64,000 bases of DNA, taken from Thalia democratica. Taxonomy: Eukaryota. Positions 16,342 to 58,643 of this stretch are shown in pieces. The position numbers and the translations under genes were made by a program. Where the stretch lies: positions 68,138,001-68,202,000 of the forward strand of contig OZ241830.1 in NCBI GenBank assembly GCA_965202585.1, written 5' to 3'. The notes below the pieces were generated by a model. That model searched no databases and had not been told where the DNA came from. It saw only the letters and a program-made list of their open reading frames with translations. Each line of letters opens with the position of its first letter. Position 1 is the first letter of the stretch.

Positions 16342-19215
16342 ATGAATAGTAAAAAACCAGTTGAAATTTTAATCAAAATGATGAAAGTCAAAACAAGTTT
16401 ATTTATATCAATAAGCAGAAATGTCAATTTGCTGCGGATGAGTGCAAGATATAAAACAACTTATTGGAATTTGAAACAACATCAGAAACAGATATAAAAT
16501 TCTTTCTTGATTTGATGCAAATGAATGCAGATCAAACAGAAGCATTTGACAACGATACGAAAGATGAAAAAAAAACAATCTGCTTTGATTAAATTAGAAA
16601 ATAAAATATTGCATGGTTCAGAGGATAAGCATGTACAAACTGTTTTTAATAAAACAAATGATGGACAAATGTTAGATAGTGAAAACGTATCTTCATTAAT
16701 TTCAACTGGTGTTAATCCATCATATAAAATTGAAATACAACGTAAATTTTCTAATACTGAAGATAAAGCAGTACAAAATGATGGTCAACTTGAAACTTTG
16801 GAATCTGAAGTCTTATCATGTCTTGATCCATCGTTTTATAAACAATGTGAAACCGACACAGATCAATTTCATCTGTCCGTAAAAACAGAAGACGCTGTTT
16901 ATAATGGAGAAAATAAACCAAAAAAATCTGCTTTGTTTGCATTAGAGGATAAAATAGTACATGATTCAGAGGTTAGGCATGTACAAGCTGCTCTTAATAA
17001 AACAGATGATGGACAAATGTTTAATGGCCAAAACATATCTTCATTATTTTTGGCTAGTGTAAATCAATTATATAAAGCTAAAATACAAAATATTTTTTCT
17101 AATACTGAAGAAAAAGTGATACAAAATTATGGTCAAATACAATTTAATTCTTGTAAAGCTGAGCATGAAGTGCTACAACATGATGTATCAACTAATAATA
17201 AACAATTGTATGTTACATACGAATTAGACAAAGAAAATGAAAATGATATGGAGGTAGTAGATAAACCAGGGTTTAAGTTCAAGTCATTAGATTCAAAATC
17301 AAAAATAAAAAAAGGAATTATATCACTCCCTGGTCAACAACCAATAAAAAAGATAACTAAATAGGAAGTCAATAAAATGAAGAGAAAATAAAATCATCTA
17401 AAAAGAAAAACCTAATTAAAAGAAAAACGAAAGATTTGGACTTAAATCTGTACATTTTGTGATGAGTTTTTAAATTGTGAAGATAATAGTGAAATTGATC
17501 CGGTAATTTGATCAACTGATAAATTAAGTAAAAGAATATTTTTCATGAAATCATTGGATTGTTTCTTGCTGTGTAAAAACATAATGATTAAAAAAAATTA
17601 TACTCTACTTTAGACTTCTACCAACTTGAAACAGTTTTATAGAGAGTTTCTACAACACCACGGATGCCTACATAAAGAATTTCACTGCAATAAGTGTAAA
17701 AAAAGTGCAAGTAAGTTTTAATAACAGGGTTTTTCACTCATGATGTCATGTTGTATATATTTTGGATTGGTTTTTAATTTTATATAAATTCTTACTCAGC
17801 TAAGATTTTTTATAGCTGTCTCAATTAAAAATTGTAGTAAAGTTTGAGTAGTTTGTTTTTAAATACGTTTATTAAACTTGAATTATTTTCATGAAAATAT
17901 GTTGTTTGAAAACGGTATTATAAAATTAAGATAAAATGTCATTTTTGTAACTAAATTATAAGAAAAAAAACTTGAGTTATATCATTTAAGTTGAAAACTT
18001 TTTTTACAGCTTCAATATTAAAAAGCAACTCTGGAGGTGCAATAAACAGTACAACGGAAAAAGATGTAATTTTGATGTTTCTGAAAAGAAAAATACTATT
18101 TTTGTCGGTAAGTTAAGTTGATATTGAAAAATAAAACTGTCATAAATCCTTTTGAAACGGATTATTATTTTATAGTTATAATAATACTAAAATAGAAATA
18201 AATAACAATAAATAAATATAATAAATATAAAAATATGATAAATATATATCAAAAGAAATGTGATTTTTTTTTAGTTAACCGTACGTAAAACTATTATAAT
18301 AATTTTTGTAGGTTCAACGAAATGGCATACAAACAATATTTTCTTTTTAAATGAACTTACAAATGAAAAGTTTTCCTCAAAAGAAGCGAGTAGCAAATGT
18401 GGCTTTACAAAACAAAGTATTATTGTGGGTTCAAAAAATACCGCAAAGTAAGTACAAGTACCTCATTATTTACAATTTTCATTATCGATCGGTTAGTTAA
18501 ACTACTAAAGCTAAACTAATGAAAAAAAAATTAAAAATTTGACATTTTTGATAAATTTTCTTTTTAAATTGTTTTTGATTGAGTCTTTTTTTATGTTTAA
18601 AAATTATGAAATACATTTTCAAAGCATTTGACATTAATTTTTTTATAAGTTAAGTAGTTATAAGTTGCTTATATTTAGATTTGTGCTAATGCACTTGAAA
18701 ATGGTAAAATTGGAGGGTATGGTAAAACGGTGGAAATAGAAGAAATTGAATTAAAATTAAATAAAAATGCTCATAAAAGCAGTAAATCATTGAAATGTCA
18801 GTTGCTTGGAGGTGTTGAATTAGAAAGTTCTAAAGCCTTCGTAGTGTATTTGGATGATGAAAATAAGAACAGTCCATCAGTTGAGTCTCTGATTGTCAAA
18901 CATGTTATACCTGGGAGCATTATAAACTATAAAGGAGAAAAAGGACTTTTAGATATAACTAAATTGAAAGAATACTCTTTAATTAGTTTTTTTCAATCAG
19001 GTTTGTGTGAGAAGTTATGGGATGAAATAAGATCTAATGTAGCAAGAAAGGGATTGAAACTATCTTTAGTTGAGAACTATATAAATAGATATATGTTTTA
19101 CAGAAAATACCGTGATAATACTTTACATCAACTTCTAATCGAAATCAGTTTGGCTTACCCGTTGAAAAATAACAATAAAACATTATCAACAACACAAGCT
19201 GATCAATGTTTTTAG
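16342..19215 (+). pseudogene. Intron-containing gene derived from a Merlin/ISXO2 (IS1016-like) transposase, DDE motif lost, now disrupted
   Basis: Exons ~16342-17502, 17614-17710, 18010-18107, 18312-18447, 18679-19215, with GT..AG introns. Translation gives FLQHHGCL..CNKC, LWRC..KRC...KKNTIFVGS, KIGGYGKTVEIEEIE, LLGGVE, IVKHVIPGSII, CEKLW and YMFYRKY..LHQLLIEISLAYP, which follow the Merlin transposase layout. Frameshifts at ~16366, ~16570, ~17700 and ~18427, plus in-frame stops (e.g. ~16451 and 17362-17450). Confidence 0.8.
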
Positions 19216-25950: not shown

Positions 25951-27520
25951 ATAACATTTTTTCTCGTTACTTTTAGTAGTGGATCGCTGAAAAGTAGTAA
26001 ATTTCTGAAACAAAATAACTATTTGTTTTGTTTATGATTACAACTAGTTTATTTTTTGTAAATATCCACTTTATAAATACAACTAATTTGTTGTAAAACA
26101 AAATTGCTGACCTTTGAAATTATTTTAGATCTTAACTAAATTAATTTTTTTTTTGTATTGGTTTATGCTTTACACATATAACGGAATAGTCAATAGTTTT
26201 TTAAGACAACAATAAAAAAAAACACATTAAATATGTAATCAGTAATGCATAAGTTTAGATAAGCATTATATAAAGGTTACTTCTGTTGGATTATAATTTT
26301 TTTATATAAATATTGTACTTGATTATTTTGTTTTTCCGTAAAACATATTATGTTAAGCTATGAATTTTTTAGTTATTATCAAGATAGTTTATTATTTTAA
26401 ACTAAACTTGTTTTACTTCTTGATAGTTGTTAAGCTATGAATACTTATGTTATTTAGAATAAGTTAACATTTTATTATTGTTTTAAAATTAATTTTTTAA
26501 TGGACTATTTAACAGTTGACGATAATTTGTCTCCGATGTCTATTCAAGTGTTACTTTTACCAAAGAGTTTTGTTATATACAAAAAGAAAATATTGACTTG
26601 CTATTTTTGCACTTATAAAATTTTAAATTTTCCTTAAAACTTTTGTATTTTTTAAAAGTGGTGAATTTTAACTTAAGGTTTAAGTAACTTTTGAAATAAA
26701 GTGTAAAAGTTTTGGTACTTTTTTTAGAAATCTACTTTAAACCCATATTTGTTTGTAGTTTTGTAAGAAAAGTACAAAAACAAATTATGTATTCTTATAA
26801 TAATAAAATAATTTCATAATTATACTTGGTTTTATAACGCAATAAAAAACACCTTACAAAGTATCAATATTATTAGAAACAATGATTAGCATTTATTTGT
26901 TTAGTCTTTAATATGGTCTAAGTTAAACTTAAAGTAAATTTTTACAGAATGTTTCATGAAATCAATCTTTATTTTTTTATTTCAGAAAGTAGTTGAATTA
27001 TAAGCATAATGTGGTAAAGTTTTGTTTTAGATAAATCATTGAAAATTAAGCTTATCAAGACAAAAACAATATTTTATATTTATTTTAACTTAATTTTACT
27101 GCAGTGATCTTCTCGGTATAAATAAATTTTTCACTAAATAAAAAATCCGAAATGAATTTTTTTTATTTTATTAATGAACTAAATTGCATAATAATTGAAA
27201 ACATTTATGAAACATTTATGAAAAAACATAAAATCAATCATGATAATTTATCTATTATAAGGTTTAAATATAGAATGTTTTAATTAGTTATCTTAACATA
27301 TATGCGTTCAACAACTTTTTGAGAGAAAAAGACATACTTTGAGTTATAAAAAATTATTACTGATAACTTGAAACTAATAAGATGTAACACATAAAGAAAT
27401 AGTATAAAACAAACTACAAAAACTAATTAGCCGAATGAAACAAAACTAAACTGAAATAGGTTCGAAAATCGATGAGAAACAAAGCTTGGAATGAAGATTA
27501 AAAATTATACTTTACTACTG

Positions 27521-29155
27521 TTAATATTTTTTAATGAGATAATGTGAGTAGTCTTCTTGAGGTCCAGATTTAAGTGGCGTCATTAAAACGATTGTGTACA
27601 GGTTTCGAATATCGTAACTAGCGAGAGTCCTATCATACTCCAATTGCTTCAACCGAGTTACAAAAATCAAACGTTGCTTTGATACTGGGAGACCTAAAAT
27701 TAACAGTTATTTTAACATTAGTTAGAGTGTTTAAATAAAAGCTTTATTATGTTTTGTGTTTTGCGTTTATGGTTTCCAAGATGATGTGATATCGAATATT
27801 TGTTTTGATTTCATGATGTTTTGACGGCATAATAATAAAATTATAGTTTACTTGTTAATTATGATAACTTTTCACTTTAAAACCTCGTTTGTCATTTTAG
27901 GTATACAATTTTTATTATCTTATTTGTTCTATCTTTCGTTTTAACTTTTTGTTTAAATACGTTATAAACTAATCTTAATGAGAATGGAATAAGAATTAAG
28001 AGCTCTGTAGCTAAACTAATATGTAATGTTTTTCACTATTAACTATTTTCTTTACCTTCTTGACTTTGAATTTTTTCTTTGACATTTTCAATAGTGTTTA
28101 AAAGATCAACTTCCAATGAGAATTGCATACCAGGTGGTAAACCCATTTTTGGGAAAGTTTCTACGAATATTCTTGTTGGTTCTTTTAGGCTGTTCATAAA
28201 TTAAATTAGTGCCACAAAAGATAAGTAGTTTATCAAACATATAACACTTAGTTGTAAAAAAATCAGTTAAATTTTAACATTAAGAAATCACAACAAACTA
28301 ACTTATCTAGGTAGTATTACTACTTTTATCTTAAAAAATGTTGTAAATTGCTCCTTAAACTTTTATATCTCAATTATAATCACTTAAAAATGTATTCAGT
28401 AATAAAAACGTTAAACCAAAAACAATAAATGCTTAATAAAAAGTATATAAAGTAAAGTAAACTTATATTTAATAATATTTAGTATTTTACCATTCAAACC
28501 TAAACAATTTTGCACAATTACTGTAACTTACAGGGTTAAGTTGAATTTGTATTTGTAATAACCCAAAGTAAAATTGTTCTCCTGCTTTAATATTTGATCA
28601 AAGTATAAACATTGCTGCTCTATGGAAGTTCCTAGTAATTAAAATAAGAGTTAGATACTTTTAATTCGTTTAGTATCAAATATAGTTAAGTATTTTATGT
28701 AAACATTTTTAAGTTATGTTTTATTGAAGTTCTTATTTTAAATAAAATACAGCTATATATGGTGTCCTTATACTCTTATACTTTTCTACATTATGAAGAA
28801 AGTGAATTTTAAGTATTTAGTGATAAAAATGCTCAAAAACTAACTACAAGAAATTGTATTTTGATACTTAACAAACTGAAAACGAACATTATTTTAATTT
28901 TTTCGTTTCAATTAAAGCAGCTTAACCTTAATTGGGCACAGAAAAATTAATTGTGAAATTAAGTTGTACTTGCATATTTAGATAAAAAATATTTGTAATA
29001 TCTTACAAAATGTACACAAGTTTAGTTACAATAAAAAAATAACCTTTCTGTTGACTTATATGACCTATGACTTGGTCAACTGACCGAAAAAACATTTGTT
29101 TTTCTATTTTTAACGTGAATGTTCTACCAGTGGTTGACTTCACAATAAAATACAT
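27521..29155 (-). CDS. Tandem di-ubiquitin-like protein, 172 aa, no C-terminal Gly-Gly
   Basis: Exons 29155-29044, 28631-28532, 28189-28056, 27693-27521, all GT..AG with phases 1,2,1. Total 519 nt, open, ending in TAA. Protein: MYFIVKSTTGRTFTLKIEKQMFFRSVDQVIGHISQQKGTSIEQQCLYFDQILKQENNFTLGYYKYKFNLTLLKEPTRIFVETFPKMGLPPGMQFSLEVDLLNTIENVKEKIQSQEGLPVSKQRLIFVTRLKQLEYDRTLASYDIRNLYTIVLMTPLKSGPQEDYSHYLIKKY. Both halves align by eye to ubiquitin (FVKT.TG.T.TL; LEV...TIENVK.KIQ..EG.P...QRLIF..KQLE..RTL..Y.I). Confidence 0.85.
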
Positions 29156-30453
29156 TTTGAATGAAGAGGCTGCTTATATAAAGTGTTATAAAACATGTAC
29201 AACTACTTTTTTTACAAACAATTGAAAACAATATATTCACTATCACAAGATGTCTAAATTTTGTTCTAGTAGTTAATATTTTAATCTAATTATTATTTTA
29301 TTTTCATTAACTTTTTGTTACTTAAAATAGCTTCTTTTGTAGATAATTATGTTCCAAGCATATTGAAACTTGTTACTTTAATTATAACTCATTTTTACAT
29401 AAGTTAAAATTTTAAACAATAAAAGGAAAAAAAAAATTTTTATAGTTTCATGTACTTTTACAAAAAAAAAACAGTTTAGTAGTTTTTAAAGTTAATTAAA
29501 GTAGTAGTAGTAGTTTAGTACTACTTTTAACTGAACTACTCTTGAAATGTTTGAAACATACTAGTTACACCTGTTAAGAAGTTAAAACAATCTATTACTT
29601 GATCTTAAAACGATAAGCAATCACCAATTAAAAATTTTGTGTTTGAATCATACATTTTAAACTTGTATTCTAAAACTACTTTGTAGTAAATCACTCGATA
29701 AAAAATTAAAAAATAATAACTATAGCTAAAATTATTTTAAAAAATGATTTCACAAGTTAATAAAAAGAATTAATTTTTTCACCTAGATTGTGTTAACTGC
29801 TTAAAATATTTTATAAACTTTTTATTTATAAGTTTTAAGTTTAGGTTTAAAATTTTACGCAAAATTAAACACCTATAAAACGTTTTAATGTGGTTTAGAG
29901 GCTATTTTAATGATTTAAAGTTTATATAGCATATTTTATTTATACTTATTATAAGTTTAGTCAAATTAACTAAACATTATACGTCTTAAATAATAAAGTA
30001 ATAGTTACAACGTTAAATAAAACTTTAAATAACTGTTGTGTTACACTAACTTTAATGAAAAAAAAATTGTTAAAGTTTTGTATTGTAGTCAACCTAAAGT
30101 TTCTTGATCTTATTATTAAAATATAATTAATTACCTTTTAAAAAAGTAATTATTATTTTTTAACTTTATACAAGTTGTCTATGATAAAACAAGTTGTCAT
30201 ATATAAAACAAGTAGTCAGAAAAGTATTAATTTAAATTGTTAAAACAGCAGATATAAAAATTATTTTTCTGTACTGTTATTATTAGATTCATTTTAGGTT
30301 TTTTAAAAGTTATTTTGATTTTAAAAATTTGTAATAAGTTGTCCCTGAAAATTTTTTTTATGAAAACAAAACCATTTAAGCCCATTTTAGTATGTATCAT
30401 TTTCATATTGTATTTAATGAAGTTTTAGATAAAGTTATACTGACTGGTAAAAT

Positions 30454-39996: not shown

Positions 39997-42900
39997 TCAT
40001 TCAAAAGTTGCATCCGGGTTGACCAGACGAGCGGCGCACGCCTTGAACTTGAGCTCGTTTCTGCCGATGTAGCTCCTCGCGTCCCTGACCAATCCGTCCA
40101 ACTTGGCCGGCTCATAATCGTCTATCATCAGTGGCTCTGTTGGCAATGTTTATCAAAAACCGTGAGATTTCAAATTGGGTAGTTTTGTTTATCAGCAGAT
40201 TTGTTGTTTACATAATCAGACCGAGATTTTTATAGTGTAGTTATAAAAAAAAAATAAACTTCAACAAGCATTTATTTTTAGTTTCATAATCATAAAAAAA
40301 TTTGTTATTTTGATGATTTTAAATAAATAGGCTATTTATGGTTCTATTTGTAAGAACTGTATAATTACTTTTATTTAGTATGAAAATTAAAAACAAAACG
40401 TTTTAAACAAAAGCCTACCATTAATGTAAGGATCGAATCGATAATAAGTTCCTTTTGGTAACAAATCGTATACTAATGAGTGCACACCTGAAAAATACAA
40501 ATTTGATTTAGTTACTACCAGTTATAAGACACCGTGTTTATCAATAAAAACTAAATAGATTTCTTTAAACAACTTTCAACATATTTTTTTTATTGAAATG
40601 AAATATTTTTCTGTGTGTTAACAAGTTAACACATTAATCGAAGCTCTGTAAAAAAATAATACTGCAAGAAAAGAATAGAAGCTAAAAGTAGGTGAGTATG
40701 TGTATTAACTAAAGACAAGCATAATTACTTTAGATGGTTCTACTACAATTAGCTACTATTCTTTTTTTTCAGTTTTTATTTTTTTACAGAGCTACGTTGA
40801 TGTAGAACACAAACTTCATATTTCAATAACATGTTTCAGTTCAATGATAAAAAGGACTGTGAAATTTGTTTTTATTATACATTCCTTGCTTCGCTAGGAT
40901 CTTAACTAACAAACGATGAGCTCTAATTTTTAAATATCTATATAGGATTTAACACCTTTTACTTTAAGCTTGTAGAAAAAAGCCTAATTTCATGGTGGAC
41001 ATAAATTCATACATTAACTAAAGTTTTCGTTTTTTTAAATTATTTTAAAAACTACAAATAAAGAAAACTTTATACTCAGTGTAATACAGAATACCGAGAA
41101 AAAGCGTCATTTAATTGTGGATCATGTGTAATTATGAGGTGGTTCTAAAAACTTAAAAAAATTAAAACTAGTAGAGTAATTTGAAGGATACCAATAAACA
41201 CATAAAACATTTATTTATAAAACCACTTAAGACCATAGTTTTTTTTTACAACAAAACAAAGTTATAAAAAATTTTTTGTACAAAAAAACTGCAAACCAGT
41301 GACATTAATGGTAAGTTCTTTAAAGTTATAAAGTGAATGTTTATAAACACGATTTGATTGTAACAGCTAGCATCTTTGACTAACTGCTAAACTAAAAGAA
41401 ACACCTAATTTCATTAAAACCTTTTTATTAACACAATGAGAACAAAAACAAAATGCTAAAGTATCTCGATGGCCGCATATACAGGCTTTGAGGGCCGCAT
41501 TTCGCCGACCTCTTTCCTAAACACTTAATCAAATAAAAACAGCACAATGTTGTGAATGATACCAGTAAACACATTTAGAATGTTTTACAAGTGCATTTAA
41601 GACAGCATTTTTTTCTTGAAACCATGAAAAAAAAAAATATTTCAGCATAAAAAACAAACCGGTGACGTTGGTGGCACCGTCCACCACCTTCATGAACTTC
41701 TCCCTCAACCCCAACTTGTTTCCGCTGGTGGGCCCCACCGAGGGCTCGTACCTGCCCGAACCGACGGAAACGACGCACTGCAGGGGAATTCCCCGCCACA
41801 GCACGTTGCACTCGTTGATGGCGATCCCCGTCGGGTTGTTGCTGAACATGGCGCCGTCCTGCGGATAAATATTTAAAAATTATATTTTTTCTTTTATAAG
41901 GGTCAAGAAAGATTTTAACAAATAATTTCGGTATGTTTTTTTTAGCTGTCATCGCATTGTTTTGTGAATGCATAGATTGAAATGAAGTACTTTAGTTTGT
42001 AATTAGAATATAATTAATTAAAATTTACGTTGTCAGATTATTTACTTGATAGAGAAAAGTGTTAATAAACGATTTTGTAGAATATTTTTTCAATAGCTTA
42101 TGTTATATAATGTTTAAATATAAACTAGTTGCTGAACATAGCCCCTGTGAGTGGGTAGGCGGAAATTAAAAAAAAACATTTTGTAAATAAATAGTAGTTA
42201 TTGCATACCAATGCTTCCAAAACGTATTTTCATAAATTCCCTCTCGGCAGCAGTTAAAAAAAAACTATTGCCCCATTTTTAGATATTGCCTCTTTACTAA
42301 TTAACAACAAATTTACATTTTTGCCGCCTTACTCATAAACACCCCGATACCCAAAATCACCCATAAAGACAATATTGTCCACATTCGGAAGTTCTGCTTT
42401 ATATTATATTTTCACTCTATTATAAAATAAAAATGCCGTGAAAACTTTTTATTTTATTCTAAATTTTATTTAGGTTTTCTATCGTGTTTTTGTAGCAAAA
42501 GAACAATTCTTTTGCTAGATCCATTATTTTTCTTGACCTATTTGAATTGGTTCCGTCCATACTTATCTGGACTAGTTTAAGTTAATCCAGGGGTTCTACA
42601 GCTGAAATAAGGTTTTCTTTGAGGTTCTTAGCGAAGGTGTGACCAAAAATTTTCGAAGTTAAGTATTGTGAAACCACTCGATTATTATTGCACTTGTACT
42701 GAACAACAATATCTATTTGGGCTTTATATAATGATGTCATTGCAGCTTCCTTCAAAAGATAATCTGCACCATCTTGATTTGTTTACTGCTTTAAGAAATG
42801 TGTTTAAGAAATGTGAACCGAGGCCAAAATTTACCAAGTGTGATAGCTTTGTTTGGGACATGTGGCATGTCTGTACTGACATGATCCATCTTTTTGTTGA

Positions 42901-45900
42901 GCTCTGCCGCTTTTTCACACGAACCGGCTGAGTAATTGTGCTTGACAGCGTGTGGAGCCCATAAGATTTTATCAGTTGCTGTTTGTGACAACCTATTGAT
43001 GGGCTCACACTGCTATCACTGCTCTCACAGCTTGCTAGTCTGCCGCTGCTCTCACCACACAGTAGCTTAACCCAGCACTGTAGAAGTATGAATGAATTTA
43101 GTTGGCCTTTTATTTCTACGTTCATATTCAGTCGTGTGGACAGTGAGCACCTGGATGAACAGTGAAAAGTACAGGAACACTAGGTTGCTTATAAATACAC
43201 CTTTGAGTTTTCAGTTAGAATTTCTTTTAAGTTTGGCAGGTACCACAAAAACAACCTGTAAAATTTCTAAATGATTTAAATAAACTTTCACCTTGTCGGA
43301 ATTCGATTTTCTGAAAACCACCTCAATGAAAATTTTATGAGACCCACAAAACGCAACCTTGGAGTTTTCAGCTCGTATATTTTTTACATGTGGCAGTTAT
43401 CATAAAAACACATTGTGCACAATTTAAGACAAACAGAAAGTTTTATGGGGTCAATCTTTGATAAGCATCACTTGCATTTAAAATTATTTCTATCATCTTC
43501 TTTAATGAAAGATTTAGAATAATATTTTTAAGTTAGTTGAATATTTTTTAAATACGTTGATTTTGGCTTTAAAATAATTAAAATATCATATATGTTTAAT
43601 AAATTTACCAATGTATTAGAAACGGACCTGGAAATAAAACAACAATGATTAGTTAGAGTGTGTAAACCTATACATAAAGTATTAGTTTTCTGTACAAGTA
43701 ATTCTAACTAAATACTCGAAACAGAAATAAAGTCACTCTTTTCCACATAGTAAAAACACACGTGAAATCTTAATAAAAAAATTTATTCTAAAAGTTTAAT
43801 TAGACCCTTAAAAAAATGAATTGCAAAAGAAAAACCGTTTATAAAATAAAATTAGAAAAATGCAGTTTTTAGTGATGATAAACTTCCTTTAAAACGAATG
43901 TTTATATCAAGTTTTCTGACTTTTCCTGAATTTTTTTAAAACCCCATTTGCTCCTGACTTTTGTCTTTTTTGTTTTTCCTGACTTTGTGGCAATCCTGTA
44001 CAGTTTATGAATAAAATTTTTGTAAAATTAAGTTATTACGTGAATTAAACACAGTATATGTTTCTGATGGTCAGTTTCTATTTTCAAAGTGACACAAAAC
44101 GTGCATTTAAACTCAACTAATACTTTTATATAAAAACAAAACATTCAAAACGAACCTGGTGGACGTTTCCCTTCCTGTGAAACTCTTCGAAGTAGCCGGG
44201 TGCGGCGGAGGACGCCCTGGCCGCCTCCCACAGCTGAGCCCTGCAGGTGCCCGGCCAGTGGGAGGTGCGCGTGCCAGGTATCACGCTGTTGCATGAAAAT
44301 TATCATAATTAGGCTAGTAGTTTAAGTTTTAGGTGCTTGAATGGGTGTTAGTGTTTTAAAAAGTCGTTACAAAATTGTTAAAGATTATCTTACTATTATC
44401 AGTAAAAACTATTGTGAGGTATCACGCTCTTGTAATGGTGGTTAGTAAATTGCTGGTATGCTTATGGTGGTGTTTTTGCAATGTGTTTTCAGTTGTAAAA
44501 AAATAAACCTAGTTTAAATAGTTATAAGGTTAGTAATTTACTTGATCAAAATGTTAAACTTTAAATTATAAATTACTTAAAACTTAAAATTTGCTTCGGA
44601 ATGGCACTAGTAAATTAAAAAGAGACTACCAAATTGAATTACACAATTTATGTTCAAGTTTGAGTAAGTTTATTTTACATCAGCGATTAAAACGTTTGGT
44701 CATAAATTAGGACATCTGCTGTTACTGTATCTTCAAAAAATATATACACTGACTTATCAAACAATAAACGTAAAATTATGTAATTTAATATCAACCAAGT
44801 TTACTTTGCACGCAAAATAGTCAATAAACTAACAAACTATTTAATTAGTAATGACATTAAACCTTGTGGCTCAAAACAAACCACAATTTGAGGTTGTTTA
44901 GTTTTATTGACTCACAAATGTTGAAGAGGGCAAATAAGTTACATCATTGTGAACACGTGATCGAAATAAACTCAAACAACATTAAAATTAAAAGCAATAT
45001 TTCTTAAACTAAATTAAATTATATTTAGTTATGACTTACATTATGAAACTAAGCACGAGTATAAACTTAAAAATAAAAAACCTTTTAATTTTAATTCAAC
45101 TATATTAGGATAAATCTTAACTAGAAAAAATAAAACATATCTCAAATACATGATTTATTAAAAACCTTGAACTACTCAACTAAAAACTGTTTTTGTTTTT
45201 AAGGAGTCCAAAACCAGATAGTTTGCATGAAGTACTTTTTTCTTAAACAACAGCTGTATATAGTTATTACAAAATGTAAACTTATAAAAACAGCCAAACA
45301 TTTTAACCAAAAATTTAATAGTGTAATATAACCCTAAGAAATACCTAATGACAACTACTATTTGAAATAATTTCTCTTAGATTCATAAGTGTGATCAAAG
45401 GAAAACCAAAAGTACAGTCGAATGAGTTCAGAAGTCTGTTTCAATCAAAAAAGAACCGCAAGAAATTAGGGATGTTGTCATATGGTTTATTTTAACTTGA
45501 GGTAAACTCAATATAATGTTTATGTCATTTGAGTGCATTTGGGCCGCAAAACAGTTGGTTAGAAACTTTGTGGGTTTTCAAAACAATTAAGCTGATTCAA
45601 AATGGTAATGCTAGTACTAAAAATGCGCGGTTTAAAAAACTCAATTGAACTTACAGACTTATAGATGTAAATTGAGTTCATTAAATCTGACAAAAATACT
45701 TTTGCTGTAATCCCAATAGCAAACATAGCTAAACTTAGAAAATTTAATCTTACCTTAACTTCGTACAGTCTTTTAAGTTTAATTTAAGCTGCCTAAAAAA
45801 AAATATTTACTACAATGTAGTTGTAACAGTTATAGTTTGGTGTGATGAAAATGAACTTTGTTTTCTGATTAATAACTTAAAACAATAAGAATATTAGATT

Positions 45901-54900: not shown

Positions 54901-57900
54901 TTTGCAACATTGTAATTTATTTTATAAGTTTTATAATATTAAGTTGTTTGATAGCAACATGTAAAACTTAAAATTAAATTTTATAAACAAAACGTTTTTA
55001 GTACCTATTTTCAAAAGAAACTTTTTAACTTTTGTTTTGTTATTTAAAACAAACTATTAAAAATAATAACTAAGATATATTATAGTCACTGCATAAGTTG
55101 TTAACAAATATATTTGTAATCACATTAAACTTGGTTACTTAATTATTACACTTCATATTAATGTATGCATCATTGATAAAAAACCAATTGTTACACAGTT
55201 TCCTCAGGTATTTGATTGTAACATTTTGATTTGTAACTTAACCAAATCTTTTCTCAAAACAATCCTTAGATTTTAATTGTTGCAGTTAAACATAAATAAC
55301 ACTATGAACTTTTAACATTAAAAAAAAACAACTAGTAGCAAAAAATAAATCAAATTTTTAATCAATATATCACATATGCATAATTTTGACTAACGTGGCT
55401 AAAATTTCAAACCAGACAGATACGTGTTCAGTACTTTATAATATTTTAAGGTCGATTCAGAGCTTAATTTTATAAAAACAATAAAAATTGTTTCTAATAA
55501 ATTTATAATACCTTCTTTAATTAACAAAACTGTAACACATTTTAATTGTGGACTTAAAAAAATAACTTTAAACAATAGAATAGTAATTTTAAGTAAAATT
55601 TAGCATACAACTAAATTAAAAACTAATAAATGAAAACTTCTTTCACATAATAACCCCTTTTCTTTTTCAACCACTTGAGTCCAGCATAAAACAATTAAAT
55701 AACTGACAAGCTAACTTAATTTATGACACAATAAAATTATGCACTGTACATAAGTCAAACTAAATTAAAATTTGTGCCTTATTATTTACAAAAGGTTAAT
55801 GGTTTAGTGTTAAAATAAAAAACATAAATTAATAAACAAATTACAAATTATTGTGAGATACATTAGAAAATATAGTTCTTTTTTTTCTATACCTCATAAT
55901 AGCATGAAAAATTACACAGTAGAATATATAAAGCCTTTAAATATAGAATAAGAAATTAAAAAAGCTCTATTAGTAACAATTTAAAGTTTACAAAGGAAAA
56001 ACACAAACCTGTACAGCGTCACAAGTTCGTCGGTGTCATTCTTCTTAACGGCCAGGAGAAATGTCAACAGCGCGCCAGTGCTGACACCGCAGATGTAGTC
56101 GAACAAGAGGTGTATCGGTTGACCGGTCAGTTTCGTCAACTTGTCCAATATTTCCACTGACACCACGCCTCTGAAAAGTAAAACTTAAAACAGATGTAAT
56201 TTGGCTACCGTATCAAACATTAAACTGCTGATCAAAACTGAAAGTGAAAACAGGGGAGTTTAGCTCGTGATGTTTAAAATTAAGCATTTATTTAAGTGAT
56301 ACATGAATGAAAAAGTAATTCATGTTTTTCTATAACCGATGACACTACACCTCTATCATAGATATTGAATTAAATGTTTACTTATATTCAACAAGCAATT
56401 AATAATTAACATAATATGACTTTTGATGATTTGAAATTTATTGCATTTTGTTATATTCCGTCTCTTTTTTATCCTAGCTAAAAAAAAAAAACTTTTTAAA
56501 AACTATTAGCAGAAAACTTCGAATGAACAAAATTTGAAAAATCAACTCTGTTTTCAAAACATCATTTGTTATCAAATGCTTTGTGTTACATTATACATCA
56601 CTCAAGTCTATTTTACCTATTAATAAATTCATCAACACATATTAACTTTTATCAAAAACCAGCAAGCACAATAGGTAAAGCATTATGAAAAATTAGTAAA
56701 CAAATATGACTTTTATTCTATGAAATTCAATATACTTACGACGAAACGTACAAACCTGCAGCCACCTCCATCGATGGCCAGTATTCTCAACCCCCTACCC
56801 TTGGGAGGGTCCACATGACCAAGCATGGCCAAAGTCATCTTCAGTGTCTTGTTTATCTCGCTCCCCTTCGTGGAGTTGTGCACCTTCTTCAACTCTTCTA
56901 TTGCGTTTTGCTGTGAAGTATATTGCTTATATTAAATAAATCTAGATATTAAGAATGTATTATTGTTAAGTTTGTACTTCATTTACAAACTAGTGCTTTT
57001 TAATAGTGTTTAGAACTAGTAATTAAGTTTATTCATACTATCTATTATGGTTTACTATGCAAAAAAACTAGTTATAGTTTTAACTAAAAACATTTCTTAG
57101 AATGGATAAGTTTAGGGAATGTATGTTATACAACTTCTGTAAGCAACATTCTAATATTCAATTTAATTCACTACTTAAATGAAGAAAAAATTAAAATTTT
57201 AAGTAGTTTTTATTGTACAATTTATCATTAACTTATACTTATTTACTTCATCAAAATACGAAACACTCAACTTGGATAATTGAGTAAAATTATTTGAATC
57301 ACAAACATCAACACAGCAAAATGTATACCAATCAATTATAGATATGAATAATCAATACTCAGCATACTAATATTATACTAAACTATAATACTAACTTAAA
57401 ATAATTAAGTACTCTATAGTTTATGCATAGTAGTAATCAATTTTTTTAGTTTGTACGTCACCACAACCAATTTCAAAACACTTATTTTATTAAACAAAAG
57501 AAAACAAAGAAACCAACTTTGACGGCAGTTATGCGGGTGGTGGGGAAATGCAGGAGGTGGTCTTTCAAGTTGACAACGTGCTGGTCCCTGGTCGCATCGC
57601 TGGACGCGTTCTTGATGGCTTTTATCAGGTACCTGGCCCGCATGTTAATGTCTGCTCGGTGGGCAATTGTCTTTGGCGGTGGCTGTGGTGCCTGTGAAAA
57701 AATATATTTTCAATTTTTAAACTTTAGCAAACGTTTATCACTAAATGATGCACTTATACAATACATAAGTCTTAAATTTTGTAAATAACTTATGAACATG
57801 TTTATCAACAATTAGAAGAATTACCGTTGGTAGAGTTGGTGTAATGACTTTTTTGGTGTTGAGCATGTCAGACACATAGCTCTGAATTGAACCCAAACTA

Positions 57901-58643
57901 GAAGCAGGATTAGTTGCAGATGTTGCAGGCTTTTCTGGCTTCTTTACTTCAAGCTTATTGTCAGGAAAGGTAGGATTGCTGACTCCATAAACACTCACAT
58001 AAGTGTTCAATGGCGTGTCAATGAAAGTTTTAAGGATGCCAAACATCTTTGCATCTTTCTCTTTATTGACATCAAGCTGGGCCATCTTTTCAAGGATCAT
58101 CGTCTCGTCGTACTGGGACTGGATCCTCTGCTTTGTTTTAAACTTCATCATTTTCAATGAGGATCTTAATTTTGATGGAGCGCTGTTTTTGACTGGGACT
58201 TTGTTGATGGCTATGTTTCCGCTTGGCGTGTAGCTTGCTGTGTTCACAAAATTTGGGTCTGGGTCAACGTTGTTGACTCTCTCTTCTATCTTGTTAACAA
58301 GGGGGTTCTCTTCATACGAGTACTGGGGGTAGCTTGAAAAATCGATGCCCATCTCTTCTTTCATATCAGGCTGGTTGGAGAATTTTTTCAAGAAAATTTT
58401 GTTTTGCAGCTGCAGTTTCGAGTTGGTGTTGAAGAAGCGCAAAAAGTTCATTGACCTTTTGAGCTTTAGTGAACTCTTGTGCAGCTCCAGTTCACTGACT
58501 TCATCTTGGATGACCAGCGTCTGATCTGTGGATTTGTACCTTGAGTTAACAGCTGTTTGTTTGGACAGAATAACTTTTTCTGATTGGGCGATTGAGTGCA
58601 AGTGCTTGTTTACAAAGTAGTTGCGGTTTACTGAGCTTTTCAT
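39997..58643 (-). CDS. PNPLA8: Calcium-independent phospholipase A2-gamma (patatin-like), 691 aa
   Basis: Exons 58643-57825, 57691-57518, 56910-56756, 56170-56009, 51972-51857, 48671-48560, 44285-44156, 41858-41660, 40487-40419, 40136-39997. All are GT..AG and phase-compatible, totalling 2076 nt, open, ending in TGA. Motifs: [31 protein letters not shown] (GxSxG), [26 protein letters not shown]. An AG acceptor at 58664-58663 implies a 5'UTR intron (candidate donor at 59811). Confidence 0.96.
42586..43260 (-). mobile_element. Possible decayed hAT element (intronic GC-richer island)
   Basis: CAGGGGTTCT terminus-like motif at 42586. Minus-strand frames give [14 protein letters not shown] and ASCESS..LIKSY..STITQ, weakly like the hAT C-terminal dimerisation domain. 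Confidence 0.35.
47991..48415. repeat. Tandem duplication, 216-bp period, two copies
   Basis: ATAATGTTTTAGTTTAATTAATCATATAGC occurs at 47991 and 48207. The core TATGACGTAACACATAGCGTATATTACGTCTTATAAAGTAAACAAAATAGTTACTAA is identical in both copies. Confidence 0.9.
51089..51730. mobile_element. Foldback MITE with long TIRs and TTAA TSD (Kolobok-like)
   Basis: TTAA at 51085-51088 and 51731-51734; termini GGGCA / TGCCT. The arms are inverted over ~280 bp, including a ~98-bp core (~51195-51290 vs ~51535-51633) with 2 mismatches. Confidence 0.8.
52390..55310. repeat. Diverged tandem duplication, ~1.65-kb period, in PNPLA8 intron 4
   Basis: Colinear matches at 52390/54040, 53118/54799 (CAAGGCGTGATTA.CAAATTCCATAC.CGGTTTTTGCAGCAACG.TAGCACTTAATCC) and 53557/55194. 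Confidence 0.85.

Follow-up and report, generated by a model that had tools for sequence, protein, structure and literature searches.

Proteins built of two tandem ubiquitin-like (UBL) domains are otherwise known as immune modifiers of vertebrates, and one of them, ISG15, has been identified in vertebrates only (PMC9722776). Here we describe a locus of Thalia democratica that is predicted to encode a protein of the same architecture and would mean that this architecture arose a second time, from intron-bearing ubiquitin genes. The locus lies in a 64,000-nt stretch of contig OZ241830.1, hereafter the window (C6:68138001-68202000 in an assembly of 802 Mb, whose contigs we designate C1, C2 and so forth); positions given without a contig are those of the window. 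We propose, with a probability of roughly 0.6, that the locus is a selectively maintained, spliced gene belonging to a lineage-specific, ubiquitin-derived family, and that its protein is a linear di-ubiquitin look-alike that is not conjugated to other proteins and acts by non-covalent binding.

Among the described systems, ISG15 shares with the predicted protein its two head-to-tail ubiquitin folds, a size of about 17 kDa, a first domain without a conjugatable end and a C-terminal extension. However, ISG15 ends in LRLRGG and is conjugated, whereas the end found here reads (R/P)L(R/K)SG-P and is followed by a conserved tail. Furthermore, when the exon 4 profile was compared with solved structures, its best 60 matches were all ubiquitin in kind (ubiquitin, polyubiquitin, ubiquitin variants and ubiquitin-L40 fusions, with no ISG15 among them), and an intron in the codon that corresponds to ubiquitin Gly35 suggests that the present protein originated separately. 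FAT10 (UBD) is likewise a tandem di-UBL of two diverged ubiquitin copies, but it is a proteasome-targeting modifier with a free C-terminal Gly-Gly and no tail, whereas in the present case Gly-Gly is absent and a tail is present. Met1-linked di-ubiquitin, polyubiquitin precursors and ubiquitin fusion degradation (UFD) substrates have in common with it the head-to-tail folds, the same Gly35 intron and, in domain 2, the residues Ile44, Lys48, Lys27 and Lys29. In contrast to these, the locus holds no near-identical GG-M repeats and no RLRGG at the domain junction, so that the protein would not be cut into monomers; it also displays a remodelled Leu8 loop with a 6-residue insertion and an extra phase-2 intron in the linker. 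Finally, Hub1/UBL5, compared by description, is a ubiquitin fold without di-Gly that acts non-covalently, as we propose here, but it is a single and universally conserved domain.

Gene model and ubiquitin-like domains

In the AT-rich window (GC 0.19-0.33), four minus-strand exons whose borders are all GT-AG join in frame to 519 nt, that is 172 codons and a TAA stop, with intron phases 1, 2 and 1. The donors of introns 1, 2 and 3 are GTTATT, GTAAGT and GTAAAG and the corresponding acceptors end in ACTAG, AACAG and TTTAG. The elements of the predicted gene are the following, in the order of transcription, a slash marking an exon-intron border:

29170..29188, minus strand: candidate 3' splice or spliced-leader acceptor (TAAC, a pyrimidine-rich stretch and CAG), 14 nt upstream of the ATG
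29044..29155, minus strand: exon 1, 112 nt; ATG and N-terminal half of domain 1, residues 1-37 plus one base of the Gly38 codon; donor G/GTTATT
28632..29043, minus strand: intron 1, 412 nt; phase 1, in the Gly38 codon (ubiquitin Gly35 by profile alignment); GT-AG
28532..28631, minus strand: exon 2, 100 nt; C-terminal half of domain 1, stopping at the beta-5 equivalent without RLRGG; carries the QQCLYFDQILKQEN motif
28190..28531, minus strand: intron 2, 342 nt; phase 2, in the interdomain linker; donor CT/GTAAGT, acceptor AACAG/
28195..28197, minus strand: ATG within intron 2, in frame with exon 3 and 6 nt ahead of its acceptor; opens an open reading frame at 28039..28197
28056..28189, minus strand: exon 3, 134 nt; linker LKEPT and N-terminal half of domain 2; PF00240 match
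27694..28055, minus strand: intron 3, 362 nt; phase 1, splitting the Gly codon that aligns with ubiquitin Gly35, with G/GT as in polyubiquitin
27521..27693, minus strand: exon 4, 173 nt including TAA; C-terminal half of domain 2, Ser-Gly end and 13-aa tail; PF00240 match
27563..27568, minus strand: codons Ser158-Gly159, aligned to ubiquitin Gly75-Gly76
27524..27562, minus strand: conserved C-terminal tail PQEDYSHYLIKKY, directly after Ser-Gly

The predicted protein thus consists of two ubiquitin-like halves, a Ser-Gly and a 13-aa tail. Read from the letters and their GT-AG borders, this model reproduces exactly what the original prediction had put forward, namely four exons in frame, 172 aa, a junction between 28532 and 28189 and a PLKSG end with a 13-aa tail, and its comparison with the tandem layout of ISG15 and FAT10 holds, since two ubiquitin-like halves stand in one predicted polypeptide.

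The two halves differ greatly in their distance from ubiquitin. Domain 2 was recovered by the Pfam profile PF00240 on each of its two exons (exon 3: E 1.6e-4, 21.8 bits, profile positions 6-32; exon 4: E 2.3e-5, 24.5 bits, profile positions 35-69), each half falling just below the cut-off of 25.4 bits. As a profile of the spliced sequence aligned to ubiquitin with hhalign, domain 2 reached a probability of 99.8% with 50% identity over 76 columns, and E was 7e-30 against ubiquitin and other UBLs. Exons 1 and 2, in contrast, had no Pfam match when searched singly, so that the check with PF00240 proposed in the original prediction gave matches for the exons of domain 2 and none for those of domain 1. 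A domain 1 profile of five members nevertheless aligned with ubiquitin over 58 columns (hhalign probability 76.7%, E 2e-5). Domain 1 is 21-35% identical to ubiquitin, with 35% as against 50% for domain 2 in the comparison with polyubiquitin, and is thus much more diverged than domain 2. When the peptides of exons 1 and 2 were co-predicted as two separate chains, the score was 0.01 and the predicted local distance difference test (pLDDT) below 50, values that speak neither for nor against a joint fold of the two halves. Domain 1 stops at the equivalent of ubiquitin strand beta-5, and no RLRGG stands at the domain junction. The profiles are therefore in line with the earlier claim of two ubiquitin-like domains, the second nearer to ubiquitin and the first lacking the LRGG region. 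A phase-1 intron at the equivalent of Gly35, claimed for each domain, was likewise found in both: in domain 2 it is apparent from direct alignment (QSQEG/LPVSKQ versus QDKEG/IPPDQQ in ubiquitin), and in domain 1 it was assigned through profile alignment (Gly38 corresponding to ubiquitin Gly35).

Domain 2 retains Ile44, Lys27, Lys29, Lys48 and hydrophobic residues at positions 68 and 70, has lost Lys63 and carries its 6-residue insertion in the beta1-beta2 (Leu8) loop. In the window copy it lacks Met at ubiquitin position 1, and Pro72 and Lys74 replace ubiquitin Arg72 and Arg74.

A four-exon family and its probable descent from ubiquitin

Searches of the genome with single exons identified at least seven related loci, five of them intact, which are distributed over three contigs. 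They form a family with a common exon order, near-equal exon lengths and phases 1, 2 and 1:

C6, window copy: intact, 172 aa; C-terminal end PLKSG-PQEDYSHYLIKKY
C2:10.85 Mb, paralog A (L037): intact, 171 aa; end RLRSG-PQENWCKYLTKKHW
C2:19.87 Mb, paralog B (L038): intact, 172 aa; end RLRSG-PQTDWCKYLIKEY
C7:59.28 Mb, L061: intact, 187 aa; longer unrelated tail
C7:59.28 Mb, L065: intact, 178 aa; longer unrelated tail
C7:59.18 Mb, L063: broken by an in-frame TAA in exon 3
C7:59.18 Mb, L064: broken by a 1-nt deletion in exon 1

The window protein shares 50-52% identity with those of paralogs A and B, the identity between the latter two being 66%, and the Ser-Gly is invariant in these three copies, hereafter termed the SGPQ copies after the residues at their shared end. 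Within this group the window copy is the most divergent from ubiquitin, with a 2-aa insertion at positions 46-48 and its Pro72. Counterparts of exon 1 are present in six other loci. Exon 2 measures 100 or 103 nt in every member; used as a query of the genome it returned nine matches, exclusively from family members, and it is the most conserved, family-specific exon. Because six further loci show the identical layout, the four-exon pattern of the window is beyond chance, and we conclude from the sequences that the window locus is a member of a lineage-specific four-exon di-UBL family and not a lone oddity. Additionally, in each of the seven loci TAAC followed by pyrimidines and (C/T)AG precedes the ATG by 14-20 nt, introns being otherwise saturated; the element at 29170-29188 of the window accordingly looks like a branch point and 3' splice acceptor, possibly for a spliced leader.

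The contig 7 loci represent a gene pair duplicated about 100 kb apart, with L063 and L064 both disabled and L065 and L061 both intact. Two exon 2-like remnants with a stop (L066 and L067) lie at C2:75.67 and 75.71 Mb, and the genome search also matched an exon 4-like remnant, tail included, with two stops at C5:21467169-21467345. The birth, divergence and death of copies are visible within one genome.

The family bears on whether the two halves form one gene at all. They might instead be two single-UBL genes, or a two-cistron operon of the kind known in tunicates, exons 1 and 2 ending at the TAA of the donor, exons 3 and 4 starting at an ATG of their own, and the 28532/28189 junction being unused. 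Reading through the donor of exon 2 does lead to an immediate stop in the window copy, paralog A and paralog B (CTG TAA, CTG TGA and CAG TAA), but any phase-2 donor that reads GTAAGT or GTGAGT brings such a stop with it, and the contig 7 copies do not have it. An independent start for domain 2 could be seen in the in-frame ATG of the window, 6 nt before exon 3, and in the Met that paralogs A and B retain at ubiquitin position 1. However, this Met is missing from the window copy and from all contig 7 copies, L061 (the one checked by eye) has no in-frame ATG for domain 2, and the first ATG past the acceptor of paralog A is out of frame. Moreover, the linker of 4-6 codons that leads from the acceptor to the start of the ubiquitin domain is open and in frame in all copies, a pyrimidine tract and a CAG acceptor precede exon 3 in every locus, and all seven loci, on three contigs, agree in their pairing, spacing (about 340-390 nt) and phases. 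Two separate genes or cistrons thus appear unlikely to us, and the di-UBL model with an exon 2-exon 3 splice is clearly the most economical reading of these sequences.

The ancestry of this di-UBL gene could be traced through its introns. Every repeat of the polyubiquitin arrays of this genome (e.g. L003, C9:6903071-6906202; others on C9, C5 and C10) has its Gly35 codon split by a phase-1 intron of about 230 nt, with the border G/GT, and each polyubiquitin exon therefore comprises ubiquitin residues 36-76 and residues 1-35 of the next repeat. Since both domains of the family carry this polyubiquitin Gly35 phase-1 intron, they would descend from this lineage's own ubiquitin genes. The nearest non-paralog relatives of exon 4 in the genome are canonical ubiquitin exons (56-63% identity). 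Taken together, these observations support an origin of the di-UBL family from ubiquitin within this lineage, independently of ISG15 and FAT10. The original prediction had pointed to a Gly35 intron in the UBA52/RPS27A fusion genes: in this genome the feature is found in every polyubiquitin repeat, so that the argument does not depend on the fusion genes, and one ubiquitin fusion gene of this genome (C7:32055645) is intron-free over positions 1-71.

The phase-2 linker intron, in turn, is not present in the other ubiquitin-like arrays of the genome. It fits either the fusion of two tandem two-exon units, with a donor cutting off RLRGG, or the gain of an intron in an exon of the polyubiquitin type. 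Of the proposal that a two-exon ubiquitin unit was duplicated in tandem in this lineage, the lineage-specific ubiquitin origin is thus borne out by the Gly35 introns, the hhalign comparisons and the relatives of exon 4, whereas duplication of a two-exon unit and a polyubiquitin ancestor with an added linker intron are both left as routes to it.

The other arrays (loci L039-L058) belong to the same lineage-specific expansion as the four-exon family: they are ubiquitin-derived, bear Gly35 introns and follow the polyubiquitin exon layout, each exon containing a C-terminal half and the next N-terminal half, often with paired domains and without di-glycine. The four-exon family differs from them in that it alone has the linker intron, a domain 1 of its own (as judged by the exon 2 query) and tails of its own.

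In the genome as a whole, at least 152 of 648 first-look candidates matched PF00240, and diverged ubiquitin-like arrays occur on C1, C2, C4, C7, C10 and C262, most of which keep the polyubiquitin exon layout, often without Gly-Gly. The four-exon family adds to this unusually large expansion, and the expansion in its entirety is probably of greater importance than the family.

In searches of the literature, neither a Gly35 intron in each ubiquitin repeat nor a di-UBL family of tunicates was found to have been reported. A search of representative proteins with the exon 4 profile was dominated by polyubiquitins, whose repeats sum in score, and was uninformative on orthologues; a homologous-protein search with the same profile returned, within its length window, only generic UBLs of 73-96 aa without the tail. 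Around the gene, the seven longest open reading frames of the window (including 16525-17364, 18730-19215, 41529-43125 and 57741-58643) matched no Pfam family at E<=0.01, and the genomic context therefore offers no functional hint. For two open reading frames of the window, no encoding contigs were on record.

The C-terminal end and conjugation

In all three SGPQ copies, the residue corresponding to ubiquitin Gly75 is Ser, and the string S-G-P-Q is invariant, so that a Pro stands right after the last Gly. The tail that follows comprises 13-14 aa in these copies, with P, Q, Y, L and K invariant in all three, and its ratio of nonsynonymous to synonymous differences per site (pN/pS) against the paralogs is 0.27. 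The C-terminus of the contig 7 members consists of 19-31 unrelated residues and lacks a terminal Gly motif. Conjugatable type I modifiers present a C-terminal Gly-Gly or a terminal Gly open to the activating enzyme (E1), and what we find in its place is Ser-Gly followed by Pro and a tail. E1 requires Arg72 and Gly75-Gly76 of ubiquitin. Ubiquitin fusions are classically made uncleavable by a Pro that follows the last Gly, and in the ubiquitin-fusion work of Bachmair and Varshavsky, ubiquitin-Pro junctions were reportedly poor substrates for deubiquitylases. Given Ser75, the invariant Pro, the constrained tail, the contig 7 relatives without a Gly end and the Pro72 and Lys74 of the window copy, it is most likely that the window protein is neither trimmed nor conjugatable to other proteins.

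The tail could also be imagined as a relic of the first strand of a following ubiquitin repeat, HMMER extending its alignment from SGPQ onto GGMQ. Shuffling, however, gave p 0.01 for paralog A only, as compared to 0.72 for the window copy and 0.91 for paralog B, which reduces the idea to speculation.

Both an adaptor or decoy that is not conjugated and a modifier processed at a non-canonical Ser-Gly end had been envisaged in the original prediction. According to the second possibility, a lineage-specific protease would cut the 13-aa tail after Ser-Gly and expose a Gly for conjugation, making the protein an independent analogue of ISG15 and FAT10. The paralogs do keep R72-L73-R74-S75-G76 nearly as in ubiquitin, with the terminal Gly at the exact ubiquitin position; tails are common in UBL precursors, and UFM1 (Val-Gly) and ATG8 have ends other than di-Gly that are processed and conjugated. 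Such a modifier is nonetheless improbable in our view, as the Pro directly follows the Gly in every SGPQ copy, the tail is conserved, unlike disposable propeptides, and neither the Pro72 and Lys74 of the window copy nor the contig 7 relatives devoid of any Gly end would suit it. The conserved Pro, the constrained tail and the relatives without a Gly end make a non-conjugated adaptor or decoy the better fit. More elaborate, and the least probable of the readings considered here, would be an ISG15/FAT10-like system proper to a non-vertebrate chordate, in which the tail is a propeptide, the family is fast-evolving and variable in copy number, and diversified conjugating enzymes (E2) and ligases (E3) serve, for example, immunity, allorecognition or fertilisation.

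On the reading that we prefer, the protein would be a pair of head-to-tail ubiquitin folds that is neither cleaved at its C-terminus nor conjugated, and that would persist as a stable, linear look-alike of di-ubiquitin, engaging proteins that recognise ubiquitin through non-covalent contacts. The retained hydrophobic face of domain 2 (Ile44 and positions 68 and 70) would provide the binding surface, and the tail may be an added docking or regulatory peptide. Because Lys48, Lys27 and Lys29 are retained, domain 2 could in turn receive ubiquitin, as uncleavable ubiquitin fusions do. Should these proteins be stable, uncleavable di-ubiquitin mimics, they would offer natural probes or regulators of ubiquitin readers; conjugation, if it does occur, would make them a new modifier system.

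Selection and variation

The ratio of nonsynonymous to synonymous substitution rates (dN/dS, Nei-Gojobori) between the window copy and paralogs A and B was 0.34 and 0.31, respectively, at a dS of about 1.0-1.25, and none of 1000 codon bootstraps reached pN>=pS. These ratios, obtained against paralogs of the same genome, are distant from the value near 1 that the original prediction had named as speaking against it. In the same comparisons, the introns are about 0.50 identical, which is the background level, and the exons 0.60-0.76; all exon gaps among the three copies are multiples of 3. Copies that are not needed appear to break quickly in this genome: L065 and L063 are separated by a dS of 0.06 only and L063 is already broken. 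The open frame and the six intact splice sites of the window copy at a dS of about 1 therefore argue for long-term selection.

Several points weigh against a maintained gene for a non-conjugated binding protein. The splice junctions of the window gene are predicted from DNA alone, since searches of the indexed runs for RNA over the window locus and over paralog A listed only DNA contigs, and the contigs aligned to the window locus show no splice joints; the binding function is purely something that we infer; and the precedents of UFM1 and ATG8 make a Ser-Gly end compatible with conjugation. Two haplotypes of the window copy, recovered as DNA contigs from runs X1 and X2, differ by K37R, E55D, L101S, N102D and E109L and one silent change, with the frame open (E55D, which is seen in contigs of high depth, may be due to cross-mapping between paralogs). 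With five replacements to one silent change, albeit in small numbers, present-day constraint on the window copy may be weak. Furthermore, run X3, from a sample labelled as another organism, contains 0.85 of the sequence words of paralog A but 0.29 of those of the window locus, and over positions 26800-29900 it yields repeat fragments only. The window copy may thus be absent or highly diverged in the X3 sample, and the locus may be subject to presence/absence variation or hypervariable.

The haplotype ratio and the apparent loss or strong divergence of the locus in X3 could also be expected of a dying or neutral copy, an unprocessed pseudogene whose frame happens to be open, other members of the family possibly being functional. 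The haplotypes diverge in exon 3 to about the same degree as in the flanking introns, the window copy is the SGPQ member furthest from ubiquitin, and decay of other members has been seen. Against this stands the time over which the gene has survived: at a dS of about 1 its 172-codon frame, ATG, stop and six splice sites are all intact and its indels are exclusively of 3n length, with dN/dS at 0.31-0.34, whereas the far younger contig 7 duplicates are already broken. The second haplotype is open as well, and at codon 109 two adjacent changes, which singly give a stop or Val, jointly give Leu. A pseudogene is for these reasons an explanation to which we give little weight, and we retain that of a selected gene.

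The variation observed suggests that this gene is fast-evolving and possibly variable in copy number, and the omega of 0.75 for the contig 7 pair fits with this. In and around the gene (positions 27738-28342, X1 and X2 contigs), heterozygosity between haplotypes amounts to about 2.6-6%.

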